64,000 bases of DNA from assembly GCF_003704095.1 (NCBI RefSeq), contig NW_020846508.1, forward strand, positions 124,001 through 188,000, given 5' to 3'. The position numbers were made by a program, and so were the translations under genes. The notes beneath the pieces were generated by a model. The model made no database searches. It was not told where the DNA came from and saw only the letters and a program-made list of their open reading frames with translations. The stretch comes from Pocillopora damicornis (lineage: Eukaryota). Position 1 is the stretch's first letter; each line of letters opens with the position of its first letter. Shown piece after piece: positions 9,987 through 16,255 of this stretch.

Positions 9987-11823
9987 TTATGCGTCAATTT
10001 TGTCACCAAGTTTTTTCAGACATTCTCCAAATCGCACGAAACAACACAGCTTCTCTTCGCAGGTCTCGCTTCCCAGCATGCAACACGGGATAACTGGCAG
10101 GCATCTCTTCTGCAGAGATGAAAAGAAAACCCAAAGAAAACTATTAAATTAGCTTACTTTTCCTCTCAGTGGTTGATGAACTACATTGTGAACTTTTTGA
10201 CAATGAAAACAGAAGTCGTTACGTGAAGAATGATGGTAATAAAGACGTAGGATGTCATGGTTTATATACAAAGAAGTATTGCTAGCTGGACATTATTTGT
10301 GCACTCCATCTTTGCCATCTCTGAAGAAAAATGTCTTTTTTCTAGACAAATAAATAATGAAGAGCGAGGAGTAGGTAGGTTGGTAGGTAAGAAGGTATCG
10401 TATAGCATAAAATTTTGCGAGTTTGATTTTTGTGAATATCCCTCAATACGAAAGTAAGTTATCACATTAAAGAAAATTTAAGTCCCGCAAAATAAACTGA
10501 ATCATCGCAAAAATAATTTCCTTCAGTTAAATCAAAACTCCACGTGCAAATCAAATGTCAATTGGCTTTCTTTGTATTTGGAATCAGTTGAAATATCCAT
10601 CTACGAACTCCCCTCTGTATAGCCCAACAATTAAGACATCAAAATATTACGTTCTTTTGTTGTTGAAGTTCGGCAGCTTGAACTAAAACTCAGAGAGGTT
10701 CGTCAGCTCAGCAAGAATTTCGTTCACAGTAAGGGAAGGTGGAGAAGGTCGCTTAGTAAGTAGGGTAAATAGGGCAGGTAGATAGGGAGGGGAGGGAGGG
10801 AGGCAAGTAGAGTAAATAGGGCAGGTAGATATGGAGGGGAGGGAGGAAGGGAGGTAAGTAAGCGATATTAAGTACCCACCACAATAGGAGGTGGATTAAA
10901 TTCAATCCCTGTTTCTTTTAGACAACATCCAGTCAGCTTGATACACTTCAGATGTTCACAAGCATCTTCTTTAGCTTTATGGTGACAGATCAGTGCTTGA
11001 GCCAAACACTTTTTCTATTGAAAAGAGAAAAACAAAGGTAAAGCAGTTTGTGTTGAAATATTAGCATTTTTCTCATAAATTTACGTTCAGAGTTTGGGTT
11101 ACCCTGTGGGAATGAATGGATAGTCTTGAAAAATCTGAACTAGGACCTAAAAAAAACTTCGTTCAATTTTAAACTCCACTGTTTGGTCCTATTTTTCTAA
11201 GAAAAAAAAATAAAAATAAAACCCTTGGAGACAAGGCATTTACTCTGTAAATTTAGTTGGAAATGTGCACGAAATGGAGATGAGTTCTTGTTTATGTAAA
11301 AATTCCCATGATGATATGATGAGTTACTCAAGCATGATATGGAAGAAGGCGCCGCAAACGAAATCTGTCTTAAGACTTTGAGTTTATTCATGTTGGCTTC
11401 TTTAAGAATCTGTCAGAAACAAGATAATTTTCATCGCAAAAAATTCACCTGTAACATTTGTTATTTTTAGCTTACGCACTGGTCAACAGGCAAGAGAAAA
11501 GCCAGCAAAAAGTAGATTTCAATTTTGTTAAATACGCAGCTACTTACTATTGGCAGTGGGACCAGTGGCTTGAAAGATGGCTTGAAAGATGGCTTGAAAG
11601 ATGGGTTGAAGGATGGTTTGAAGGATGGGTTGAAGGATGGTTTGAAGGATGGTTCAAAGCTGGGTCCAGGATCTTGCAGTTTCAAGATGCCGCGAACTTT
11701 TCTGACCATCTCATGATCTTCCCTCTCAAGATAATTTAGAATTGCATGTGGATGGTACTCCATCTCCGCCTGAGCATACAAGGCCAGTGCCGAGAGAAAC
11801 AGCAAAGCAACTATTGCCTTCAT
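9987..11823 (-). CDS. Secreted cysteine-rich protein A (177 aa, 3 exons): signal peptide, pro-like segment, (PSFK/N/E)8 repeat and two Cys-rich modules
   Basis: Exons 11823-11548, 11014-10880 and 10109-9987, all with phase-0 GT-AG introns. Translation: MKAIVALLFLSALALYAQA|EMEYHPHAILNYL... | KKCLAQALICHHKAKEDACEHLKCIKLTGCCLKETGIEFNPPPIV | KRCLPVIPCCMLGSETCEEKLCCFVRFGECLKKLGDKIDA*. TATA box upstream. Confidence 0.88.
10758..10861. repeat. Purine-rich tandem duplication (about 48 bp x2) in intron 2 of protein A
   Basis: AGTAG(G/A)GTAAATAGGGCAGGTAGATA..GGAGGGGAGGGAGG occurs twice. Confidence 0.8.
11569..11664 (-). repeat. Coding 12-nt tandem repeat x8 encoding PSF(E/K/N)
   Basis: The + strand reads (N)TTGAA(A/G)GATGG repeated, which translates to PSFE PSFK PSFN PSFK PSFN PSFK PSFK PSFK. 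Confidence 0.95.
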
Positions 11824-11882
11824 GTCTATTCGTCTCCTGTGTGCTCTGGAAAACACGATGTGCACAGACCAACGCGTGTTTG

Positions 11883-11890
11883 TTTATATA
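11883..11890 (-). promoter_or_regulatory. TATA box of secreted protein A
   Basis: TATATAAA on the - strand, about 60 nt upstream of ATG 11823. Confidence 0.7.
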
Positions 11891-12265
11891 CAGCACAGAA
11901 AACCATGAGACCGCACTGCACACGCTTCGTGGGACAAATGCATTTGATTTTACTGTTGAAACAGCTTTGAGGAACTTTACCCTTATCTCTTTTTGTTTGG
12001 ACGGAAACAAAAGAGGAATCAAACCTTTTGTAATAAGTAATATAATTTCAACATCTAATTCTTTCTTTTGTTCCCCTCTTTTGTGTCATCAGCCTTTCTG
12101 AGGAACTGATTGTTTCATTTACTTTTCTCTTGCTCACTCTCGGTTCTTGAAAATTAAAACGTTTCTGTTAGCAAGGCTTTGGTGGAGTAACTATTTTAAA
12201 GCAGGAGTATGCAAGTAAAGATTAAATGGAAGAAATGCTAAGACTTCCTCTTGGCCATAGATATG

Positions 12266-14526: not shown

Positions 14527-14533
14527 TATATAA
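14527..14533 (+). promoter_or_regulatory. TATA box of secreted protein B
   Basis: TATATAA about 60 nt upstream of ATG 14589, the same spacing as in the paralog. Confidence 0.7.
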
Positions 14534-14588
14534 GGCACGTTCGTTTTACCAATGATACAGTGTCAAGTGCACACATCTTGGAGCCAAA

Positions 14589-16255
14589 ATGAAGATTTTT
14601 GCAACTCTCTTGCTTCTCGGCGCCTTTGTCGCATATGTGTCGGCCTTTGAGATGCCCTTTCACAAGGCTGTGTTCAAATTCCTAGATGAGCGACATGATG
14701 AAAGAATGGCACAGGTTGTGAGAGACTTTGGATTACCAGAAGACACTTTGGCGTTGAATGATATCAATGCCACCAACGCTACAGCACCTGCCAAACCCGT
14801 CAAACCAGAGGGATTCCCAACATTTCTTGTAAGTTGAAGCAATACCCCTTACGGCTTACTTTTTTGTATTTGTTCTCAGATTACCAAAATTTCGTGAAAA
14901 GTCAGTTATTGTGCTTGTGTGTATATCACAATTTTTAATTCTGCCAAGTTGGCAATTAGATTGGGTGTTTTATTTATATAACCTCTTTTTTCTTAAATCA
15001 TCATGGCTTGAGCGATACATTTATTGGCTTTGAAGAATTATTTTCTCATCTTCACCCTGAGAAATAATCGACAAAACACAATCGCCTTCCTTTGGAAAAT
15101 GGTCGTCAAATACTCGTCTAAAGATCATTTTGTTGTTGCTAATTACAGATAGCATGCGTGGGTAAGGCACAAGTCTGCTGGAAGGTTGCGGGTCATGACG
15201 AATGTAAAAAGCTCGGATGCATCGACAACTTTTTTAAGTGTATAAAAGAAAACCATCCCACTCCGCTGCCAGAGCTTTCCCCACTAGAGGTAAAGCAGCT
15301 CAGTATTATACCAACGTCACAGCTATGATTTTCTCTTTTATTTCTTTAATTTGTGCAACACCCAGGTCTGATTAATATGTAACTTCTACCCATGATATCT
15401 ATATATTATCCAGCAATTAGGTGATAAGAATATTCAAACTCATCAAGGAAAAGTTCTTATCTTGATCCAACACCAAATTCTCAATACTAATTTACAAGGA
15501 AATGTGTAGCAGCTAGAAGGGAGAATTAACAATCAGATCTTAGGAGTAAAAGGGTGAAAGCAGATAAACTCTTTGAAACCTTCCAACTGGGCCACGCAAC
15601 TTTTTTGTGATGCATTTTTAGTAACTGTCATTCAAGGCGTAAGCTTGGCTTGCAATTCTGCAAATTTTAAATTTTTGACGCAAAATACACATCTGCGATT
15701 TACCTTTAAAAAATCTTAAGTAAAACATCATACACACAGAAGCAGTTTACTTTAAAGGATGATGATTCCAACGGCACACCAATTTACCATTGCAGAAATA
15801 TGTATATACATATACATACATAGGGAGGATTTTCCTTTTCCCCTTTTCCTTCGCCAGTTACATTGCAATAACTTTTCCTGCTTCATTTTGTTTTTATCTG
15901 CCCTCGCTTTCCTTTATTCACGTTAGCAGTTGCAACGTACTTTCTATTAAAGATTATTCCAATGATCTTACCAGAGCTAGGAAAACAAATGTGGCATCGA
16001 TAGTAAAATATTTCAGACCTGACCTGCTATTTAAGCACTGTCCAATTAATACTTAGTTATGATCATGAACTCTTTTCCCTTTGAATACTATGATTTGTCT
16101 GTATTAACTAAGCATATTTGCGTTTGTTTCCCCTGCAGAAAGGCTGCTTATTTTTGCTTCACATATGCAGAAAAGGTTCTCCTACTTGTGCTGGTGAATT
16201 GTGCTGCTTCCTTCGTATTAAGAAGTGCTTCGAATTAGCAGAGGGAAAGGAGTAA
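14589..16255 (+). CDS. Secreted cysteine-rich protein B (165 aa, 3 exons), paralog of A
   Basis: Exons 14589-14828, 15149-15289 and 16139-16255, phase 0. Translation: MKIFATLLLLGAFVAYVSA|FEMPFHKAVFKFL... | IACVGKAQVCWKVAGHDECKKLGCIDNFFKCIKENHPTPLPELSPLE | KGCLFLLHICRKGSPTCAGELCCFLRIKKCFELAEGKE*. AATAAA at 16369. Confidence 0.88.
15358..15558. mobile_element. MITE, subfamily A, in intron 2 of protein B
   Basis: Internal TACAAGGAAATGTGTAGCAGCTAG..GGGAGAATTAACAATCAGATCT is shared with 23242, 43889 (rc) and 57618. Confidence 0.75.

Follow-up and report, generated by a model that had tools for sequence, protein, structure and literature searches.

A 64,000-nucleotide (nt) stretch of the genome of the stony coral Pocillopora damicornis (RefSeq assembly GCF_003704095.1, contig NW_020846508.1, positions 124,001 to 188,000 of the forward strand; here called the window, in which all positions below are counted) carries two divergently transcribed genes, A and B, that encode small secreted cysteine (Cys)-rich proteins. 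This head-to-head layout is kept in five stony-coral genera from both main branches of the group, and it has been kept through duplication of the whole pair, which gave a second pair, A′ and B′, in the same genome. Genes A and B and their homologs, which we call A-types and B-types, make up a new, unnamed stony-coral family of a familiar general kind, that of lineage-restricted secreted Cys-rich proteins. We are highly confident of the genes, the family, and its architecture, while our views of what the two proteins do together are more tentative and are weighed below. Stony corals build reefs, yet no function is known for many of the most abundant secreted proteins restricted to their lineage.

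Two divergent genes encode secreted proteins with two Cys modules

The first-pass annotation of the window, made from the sequence alone, had proposed two divergent genes with a TATA box, a signal peptide, and an N-terminal segment in common, followed by two Cys modules that each occupy a phase-0 exon of their own. Our gene models bear out this architecture for both genes, by translation as well as by RNA joints (Table 1). Every intron is of the GT..AG type and in phase 0, and translation of the exons yields a protein A of 177 amino acids (aa) with 13 Cys and a protein B of 165 aa with 11 Cys, the same Cys counts as first reported. The TATA boxes stand 67 nt (A) and 62 nt (B) upstream of the start codons. 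By inspection, the signal peptides of A and B are 19 aa long, each a hydrophobic leader with a small-x-small ending, and are cleaved between AQA and E and between VSA and F. In the N-terminal segment that follows, E, H, and M residues are invariant in 13 full-length homologs.

Exon 1 of gene A encodes the signal peptide, the conserved helical segment, and a spacer in which a 4-aa unit, Pro-Ser-Phe-x, occurs eight times; the underlying DNA is a 12-nt tandem repeat of 8.2 copies (positions 11566 to 11663). This repeat varies in copy number: the database fragments P0001 and P0002 have their units in different numbers and in a different order, and one RNA contig with a joint is 12 nt shorter overall. 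Exon 1 of gene B likewise encodes a signal peptide and the conserved helical segment, followed by a spacer with two N-x-T sequons. The Cys of protein B are spaced C-x6-C-x8-C-x4-C-x6-C in module 1 and C-x6-C-x6-C-x4-CC-x6-C in module 2, exactly as initially described. The same spacings had been assigned to protein A, but its modules read C-x6-C-x8-C-x4-C-x5-CC and C-x5-CC-x6-C-x4-CC-x6-C, so that module 1 ends in CC and module 2 has CC at its second position.

Table 1. Features of the A/B region, in window coordinates
Feature	Position	Strand	Remarks
Gene A exon 1, coding part	11823..11548	minus	92 aa; RNA joint 11014/11548 in runs X15 and X18
Gene A exon 2	11014..10880	minus	45 aa, 6 Cys, Cys module 1; RNA joints 10109/10880 and 11014/11548
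Gene A exon 3 with stop	10109..9987	minus	40 aa, 7 Cys, Cys module 2; RNA joint 10109/10880 in run X15
Gene A TATA box	11885..11890	minus	67 nt upstream of ATG; paralog A′ similar at 69 nt
Gene A 3′ untranslated region (UTR) element	9860..9928	minus	B-type element antisense to A mRNA; 80% identical to paralog A′
Gene B exon 1, coding part	14589..14828	plus	80 aa; RNA joint to 15149 in runs X15 and X18
Gene B exon 2	15149..15289	plus	47 aa, 5 Cys, Cys module 1; RNA pieces 14561-14825 and 15149-15289 in one record
Gene B exon 3 with stop	16139..16255	plus	38 aa, 6 Cys, Cys module 2; RNA loose end at 15289 enters 16139
Gene B TATA box	14527..14532	plus	62 nt upstream of ATG; RNA contig begins at 14561, ~30 nt downstream
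Gene B 3′ UTR	16262..16374	plus	X-box-like palindrome, GATATCGAT motif, CAATCAGGCTC motif, poly(A) signal at 16369-16374
Assembly gap	12266..12365		intergenic spacer between the two promoters

Both genes are transcribed and spliced

We mapped Logan contigs onto the window, taking RNA runs X15 and X18 from two independent studies and one DNA run, X1. Genes A and B are clearly transcribed, and spliced as modeled, in the same libraries. RNA contigs from both studies support all four introns, with joints at 10109/10880 and 11014/11548 in gene A and at 14828/15149 in gene B. The gene B joint appears as 14825/15149 plus three letters, which reflects a C-to-A variant at position 14826. For the second intron of gene B, an RNA loose end at 15289, found in X15 and X18, runs into the first 30 letters of exon 3 at 16139. 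Spliced transcripts of both genes, whose absence was named at the outset as grounds for rejecting the pair, are thus present in two studies, and the occurrence of contigs of both genes in X15 and X18 agrees with the proposal that A and B are expressed together.

Contig depth measures expression poorly, and the RNA runs were picked for containing the A and B genes; with that limit, depth was ∼900 to 1,160 for A and ∼916 for B in X15 and ∼2,100 to 5,400 for A and ∼2,980 for B in X18, compared with 3 to 17 in the introns. A third RNA run, X17, gave thin, even coverage that was the same in exons and introns. The 5′ UTR of gene A is at least 17 nt long (an RNA contig extends to 11840), and on its 3′ side RNA contigs span positions 9900 to 10110, one of them continuing for ∼63 nt beyond. 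In Stylophora, a 914-nt RNA contig encodes an uninterrupted A′-type protein of 169 aa and aligns to the Stylophora genome in three blocks; splicing is therefore demonstrated in this genus, too.

The head-to-head layout is conserved in stony corals

The A′/B′ pair lies on contig C3459 of the same Pocillopora genome, where 3.9 kb of N-free sequence separates the two starts and the TATA boxes stand at 69 and 66 nt. An A-type gene of Orbicella is divergent from the B-type gene LOC110044144, 5.5 kb away in N-free sequence. Oculina has two separate A-types, each with a divergent B-type neighbor, and Porites has an A-type divergent from a B-type named B1, with a further B-type, B2, following B1; all three of these arrangements are gap-free. 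The Stylophora A′ and B′ genes are divergent as well, with a large run of N between them. In Montipora, an A-type and a B-type hold consecutive RefSeq accessions on one contig, from which we infer that they are adjacent. The head-to-head layout of the first-pass annotation is therefore real and conserved. As a side observation, the Porites lobata protein CAH3173707.1 (P0106, 283 aa) is a fused gene model in which exons 1 and 2 of B1 run straight into the entire tandem copy B2.

In the window itself, the spacer between the two promoters contains an assembly gap (Table 1) that begins 442 nt upstream of the ATG of gene A and ends 2,223 nt upstream of that of gene B, with no exon or reading frame across it. 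DNA contigs of run X1 halt at both edges: one ends at 12265 with 93 further letters, and the one on the right begins with 717 letters that have no match in the region and enters it at 12366. Because these contigs carry 93 and 717 extra letters inward, the gap is longer than 100 nt and is unbridged. A 19-nt tandem repeat of 2.5 copies (12366 to 12413) abuts the gap on the right and may account for the assembly break. The paralogous A′/B′ spacer proved unusable as a bridge, its similarity being confined to the promoters. Farther into the spacer, at 13300 to 13499, the depth of DNA contigs is about five times higher than around it (569 versus ∼110), which suggests a moderately repeated element.

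An unbridged gap that exceeds its 100 N and borders a tandem repeat could be read as a sign that the pair in the window is an assembly artifact or that one of its genes is a pseudogene. Both A and B are intact, spliced, and transcribed, however; Orbicella, Oculina, and Porites have gap-free head-to-head A/B genes; and the C3459 pair is gap-free between its starts. We consider an artifact or a pseudogene extremely unlikely. In particular, a misjoin is very unlikely because the layout is kept in both main branches of stony corals and through duplication of the pair.

The family is conserved in stony corals and has relatives in sea anemones

We searched each exon separately and carried out full-length analyses on natural database homologs. 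In protein searches, close homologs came solely from stony corals (Oculina, Orbicella, Porites, Montipora, and Stylophora), all labeled uncharacterized or hypothetical, and exon 1 of A and exon 1 of B matched their homologs at E values of 2e-48 to 1e-14. The orthologs and paralogs include Orbicella faveolata LOC110044144, Stylophora pistillata LOC111327137, Montipora foliosa XP_068700861 and XP_068700862, Porites lutea XP_073259487, and Oculina patagonica ACROYT_G020364, G020379, and G020382. They share with A and B the three exons, the signal peptide, the N-terminal segment, the two Cys modules, and the head-to-head layout; they differ in Cys total (11, 12, or 13) and are unnamed, with no Pfam domain or described function. 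For the Stylophora B′-type protein, a search gave nothing but a fragment that matched the query identically across the region searched. Profiles of the A-types and B-types align with each other at a probability of 99.4% (E = 3.8e-21; 148 columns), so A and B are true paralogs, as had been proposed.

Within the Pocillopora genome, the family profile finds 17 modules on just four contigs, namely, the window (A and B), C3459 (A′ and B′), C1700 (a lone B-type, B″), and C2012 (a more distant cluster). The C2012 cluster, at ∼76,500 to 103,700, holds at least three to four of these more distant members, most of them in tandem on a single strand. The signal peptide, the N-terminal segment, and the two-module layout recur in these members, but both modules have five Cys.

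The family profile also matches sea anemone proteins, i.e., LOC5515691, LOC5509370, and LOC5516389 of Nematostella vectensis and LOC116286889 of Actinia tenebrosa, at E values of 8e-15 to 3e-4 and in two to five stretches each. These relatives, likewise uncharacterized, share the C-x6-C ... C-x6-C module and Pro-rich (Pro/Arg-rich) spacers, but they are 316 to 407 aa long, with four to six tandem modules of mostly four Cys each and poly-Asp or His-rich stretches, and they lack the A/B-type N-terminal segment. The module therefore predates stony corals, whereas the two-module A/B form is found in stony corals alone. Together with the absence of Pfam and Protein Data Bank (PDB) matches described below, this fits the initial view of a lineage-restricted, unrecognized secreted family.

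Across the deep split between the stony-coral branches, orthologs are 59 to 68% identical over both modules, and exon 3 of gene A is 80 to 82% identical to those of the Orbicella and Porites A-types. The ratio of nonsynonymous to synonymous substitution rates (dN/dS; Nei-Gojobori method) against the Orbicella, Oculina, and Porites orthologs is ∼0.09 to 0.24 for both Cys modules, with synonymous sites near or past saturation. By this measure, the A and B orthologs are under purifying selection. The low ratios and the conservation of orthologs make the family a poor fit to the hypervariable scaffolds of toxins and antimicrobial peptides, to which it had been likened. The residues between the Cys had also been described as highly diverged, which is correct for A versus B but not for orthologs.

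A and B match no characterized family

No family reached the Pfam cutoff with any exon (E up to 10) or with five full-length homologs (E up to 1). There was no Pfam match to ShK-like, saposin, defensin, secretoglobin, CHCH, or galaxin families, although whether Pfam holds a model for each of these was not checked. A family profile search of the PDB gave nothing significant (best E = 0.73). Structure comparison returned only generic helical bundles, both with Foldseek (best E = 1.0) and with VIA-align (best Z = 5.9, to a generic four-helix pollen allergen). In the ESM Atlas, the Orbicella B-type found only chance-level look-alikes among spider-toxin precursors (scores of 0.77 to 0.78), and one Nematostella relative found no match. 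Sequence, profile, and Foldseek searches thus did not yield the strong match to a characterized family that, according to the first-pass annotation, would have refuted its reading. In the text of the papers searched, no accession or locus name of the family occurred, and two short motifs gave nothing relevant.

The small Cys-rich proteins (SCRiPs) of corals have pre-proteins of 68 to 83 aa and mature forms of 40 to 48 aa, with an eight-Cys framework that ends in CCC and a beta-defensin-like fold (PMC10892658). Like A and B, they are taxonomically restricted, secreted, and Cys rich and occur in stony corals and anemones; A and B, however, are 165 to 177 aa long and helical, have 11 to 13 Cys, lack the CCC, and so fall outside the SCRiP definition. 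This agrees with the first-pass annotation, which could fit the spacing to none of the SCRiP, ShKT, defensin, and saposin frameworks. Another Cys-rich protein of Pocillopora damicornis, Pdcyst-rich, belongs to the Ly6/uPAR proteins, with a three-finger domain of 8 to 10 Cys, a C-terminal CCXXDXCN motif, and a glycosylphosphatidylinositol (GPI) signal (PMC2728513). We rejected this identity for A and B, which lack the CCXXDXCN motif and have homologs modeled as helical.

Three further groups resemble the pair in structure or genetics. The secretoglobins, such as cat Fel d 1 and mouse androgen-binding protein (ABP) alpha and beta/gamma, are encoded by head-to-head genes that duplicate as pairs, and their chains are joined by interchain disulfides. 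They resemble A and B in being small, secreted, all-helical paralogous chains, but there is no sequence or Pfam relation, the fold match to Fel d 1 is at chance level (E = 3.3), and for A and B a heterodimer is a proposal. Ectatomin, from ant venom, consists of two chains of ∼35 aa that are homologous disulfide-stapled hairpins and form a four-helix bundle with a linking disulfide; in A and B, both hairpins lie in one chain, and the Pfam Ectatomin model came up only with an anemone relative, at chance level (E = 0.19). The twin CX9C/CX3C (CHCH) proteins are helix-turn-helix proteins with two Cys per helix at a fixed spacing, which staple the hairpin. The spacing in A and B is CX6C, and these proteins carry signal peptides rather than entering the mitochondrial intermembrane space and have no Pfam CHCH match.

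Predicted fold and the odd Cys

AlphaFold2 models of the Orbicella B-type and the Montipora A-type predict each module as a helix-turn-helix, with a module pLDDT (predicted local distance difference test) of 73 to 90. The predicted helix pairs, four helices per protein, are 67-80/84-101 and 111-126/130-146 in the Orbicella B-type and 75-91/95-111 and 121-136/140-161 in the Montipora A-type; the N-terminal segment is modeled, with lower confidence, as two short helices, and the spacer as disordered. In an alignment of module 1 with module 2, four Cys are invariant and a fifth is nearly fixed. In these models, a C-x6-C on each helix of the hairpin would place two Cys on one face, an arrangement suited to two cross-helix disulfides.

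Cys at i/i+7 on the same face of a helix, together with an N-terminal segment rich in His, Glu, and Asp, could alternatively mean that the Cys form no disulfides and instead line a metal-binding four-helix bundle of the kind known from bacterial copper storage proteins; one of these, Csp1, is among the weak fold matches (E = 2.6 to 4.5, not significant). We find this very improbable, given the signal peptides, the normally oxidized state of Cys in the eukaryotic secretory pathway, the chance level of the fold matches, and the anemone modules, whose only four Cys are placed as for two hairpin staples.

Eleven Cys, five in module 1 and six in module 2, are invariant in the 13 full-length homologs. 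With an invariant core of 11, a Cys that is unpaired or bonded between molecules is unavoidable in members with 11 or 13 Cys, and so the early claim of at least one unpaired Cys in both A and B stands. An odd count is not a fixed feature of the family, though, as totals of 11, 12, and 13 are all found. Written as A/B, the totals are 13/11 in the Pocillopora A/B pair, the Montipora pair, and the Oculina pair with P0010; 12/12 in the Pocillopora A′/B′, Orbicella, and Porites A/B1 pairs; and 12/11 in the Oculina pair with P0019. The extra Cys of module 1 has four alternative positions, of which A-types use two and B-types the other two. In six of the seven pairs, which are also those with matching Cys parity, it is present in exactly one partner, as a shared interface would predict. 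The seventh pair departs from this pattern, and six of seven is not significant given shared ancestry. We rejected a rule that the Cys of a pair always total 24, which is true in six pairs and broken by the seventh (Oculina 12/11).

Do A and B act as partners?

Our best explanation is that A and B are a conserved secreted pair whose products are made together as partners. Both genes would be driven from the shared spacer of 3 to 6 kb and made together in similar amounts, and the two proteins would be cosecreted and function as partners. One Cys of the invariant core of 11, lacking an intramolecular mate, would most likely form an intermolecular disulfide, either between A and B or in a higher-order assembly, much as disulfides link the two chains of the secretoglobins. 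Taken as a whole, we hold this explanation to fall slightly short of an even chance; the disulfide-linked A-B complex, considered by itself, is possible but doubtful. On the nature of the task, the strong conservation and high expression point to an extracellular role that has been conserved and not to a fast-evolving weapon.

Several observations weigh against partnership. Some further B-types have no partner, namely, B″ on C1700, Porites B2, and, in Orbicella, a second B-type exon 3. Three of the pairs (Pocillopora A′/B′, Orbicella, and Porites) are 12/12 and one Oculina pair is 12/11, and with totals that vary in this way the counts do not demand a single conserved intermolecular bond. A complex prediction with the Cys domains of the Montipora A-type and B-type scored 0.00, which speaks neither for nor against contact between the two proteins. 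To these can be added the limits of contig depth given above and the absence of the Stylophora A′-type accession from the supplements consulted for one Stylophora skeleton proteome paper.

Lone B-type copies and varying Cys totals are what one might see if A and B were independent monomeric secreted effectors, such as defense peptides, toxins, or signals, that are adjacent only via shared regulatory DNA and whose odd Cys stays free, lies buried, or carries a small molecule. A signal peptide followed by a Cys-rich domain is the usual layout of effectors, and the ESM Atlas look-alikes are spider-toxin precursors, though only at chance level. The low dN/dS and the identity between orthologs are, however, unlike those of weapons under diversifying selection, the A-beside-B layout has persisted across genera and through pair duplication, and the SCRiP, ShK, defensin, and saposin families are unmatched. 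We judge independent effectors to be unlikely, though an alternative to be taken seriously.

A different role is suggested by the very high transcript depth in adult colonies, the extended Pro-rich spacer with its variable repeat number, the confinement of the two-module form to calcifying corals, and the poly-Asp and His-rich stretches and many modules of the anemone relatives. In that case, A and B would cross-link extracellular material (mucus, mesoglea, or the skeletal organic matrix), with the spare Cys bonding other matrix proteins and not A to B. The proteins are nevertheless small, with a compact folded domain, and neither the consulted skeleton proteome supplements (for the Stylophora A′-type) nor the searched papers (for the family) contain their accessions. 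Such a matrix function seems to us improbable.

Conserved, mutually complementary UTR elements

The B-type 3′ UTR is conserved over ∼110 nt, from just past the stop codon to the poly(A) signal, in eight B-types from four genera, across paralogs and across genera of both main branches; it is also present in a Montipora mRNA contig. It looks better kept than the coding sequence, a comparison that we have not quantified. The A-types have a 3′ UTR element that is just as well conserved; it is kept in Orbicella, Oculina, and Stylophora and is present in mature Stylophora mRNA. This A-type element aligns with the B-type 3′ UTRs as their reverse complement. The opposite orientation of the shared element is solid, and the A and B transcripts are therefore mutually complementary. 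The element was also seen at loci L018, L028, L033, L034, L035, L027, L032, L031, and L039; it is not a genomic repeat, and Rfam had no match in positions 9700 to 16500.

The predicted duplex between the A and B 3′ UTRs has an energy of −46.4 kcal/mol in the Pocillopora A/B pair (z = −2.2 versus dinucleotide shuffles), −56.5 kcal/mol in Pocillopora A′/B′ (z = −4.0), −56.6 kcal/mol in Orbicella (z = −4.2), and −52.4 kcal/mol in Oculina (z = −3.8). We hypothesize that A and B mRNAs could pair through this element. Self-duplexes of two A transcripts can equal the A-B duplexes in stability, which counts against such pairing. Partner-specific compensatory changes were sought as well and rejected, as complementarity within pairs was no better than across pairs. 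The alternative is that the element acts at the DNA level, for instance, as a site for an RFX factor.

If the mRNAs did pair, A and B might be coupled at two levels: complementary 3′ UTRs (∼45 to 110 nt) would tie together the fate or location of the two mRNAs, and the proteins would join via their odd Cys in a disulfide-linked A-B complex, giving a stoichiometry-locked two-chain secreted protein specific to stony corals. We put this forward as a speculation that is quite improbable as a whole.

The 5′ UTRs show conservation of their own. Just upstream of the ATG (14556 to 14588 in gene B and 11824 to 11865 in gene A; also at L033, L034, L035, and L027), they are conserved within each type across genera, which is visible as conserved pseudo-translations ahead of the start codon. 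Both the 5′ and the 3′ UTRs are conserved between paralogs as well as between genera.

Repeats in the introns

Two introns of the pair contain repeated sequence. A 47-nt repeat of 2.2 copies lies inside intron 2 of gene A (10758 to 10861). Intron 2 of gene B contains a very high-copy short element at 15390 to 15560, where the word depth of DNA contigs is ∼70,000 to 358,000, compared with ∼100 around it; many loose contig ends fall at 15486 to 15491 and 15538 to 15559, and the element is abundant in the RNA runs, too. It is probably a short interspersed or miniature transposon.

Implications

The helical-hairpin module, with its C-x6-C on each helix, has no Pfam model and could be defined as a new domain family of corals and sea anemones. 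The A/B pair is highly transcribed and under strong purifying selection, its layout is kept in both main branches of stony corals, and it is unnamed in the databases and in the papers searched. It thus offers coral cell atlases, proteomics, and structural studies a clearly defined target. Should A and B prove to form a disulfide-linked complex, or should their complementary 3′ UTRs couple their expression, the pair would be a clear case of a coevolving two-gene unit outside bilaterian animals.

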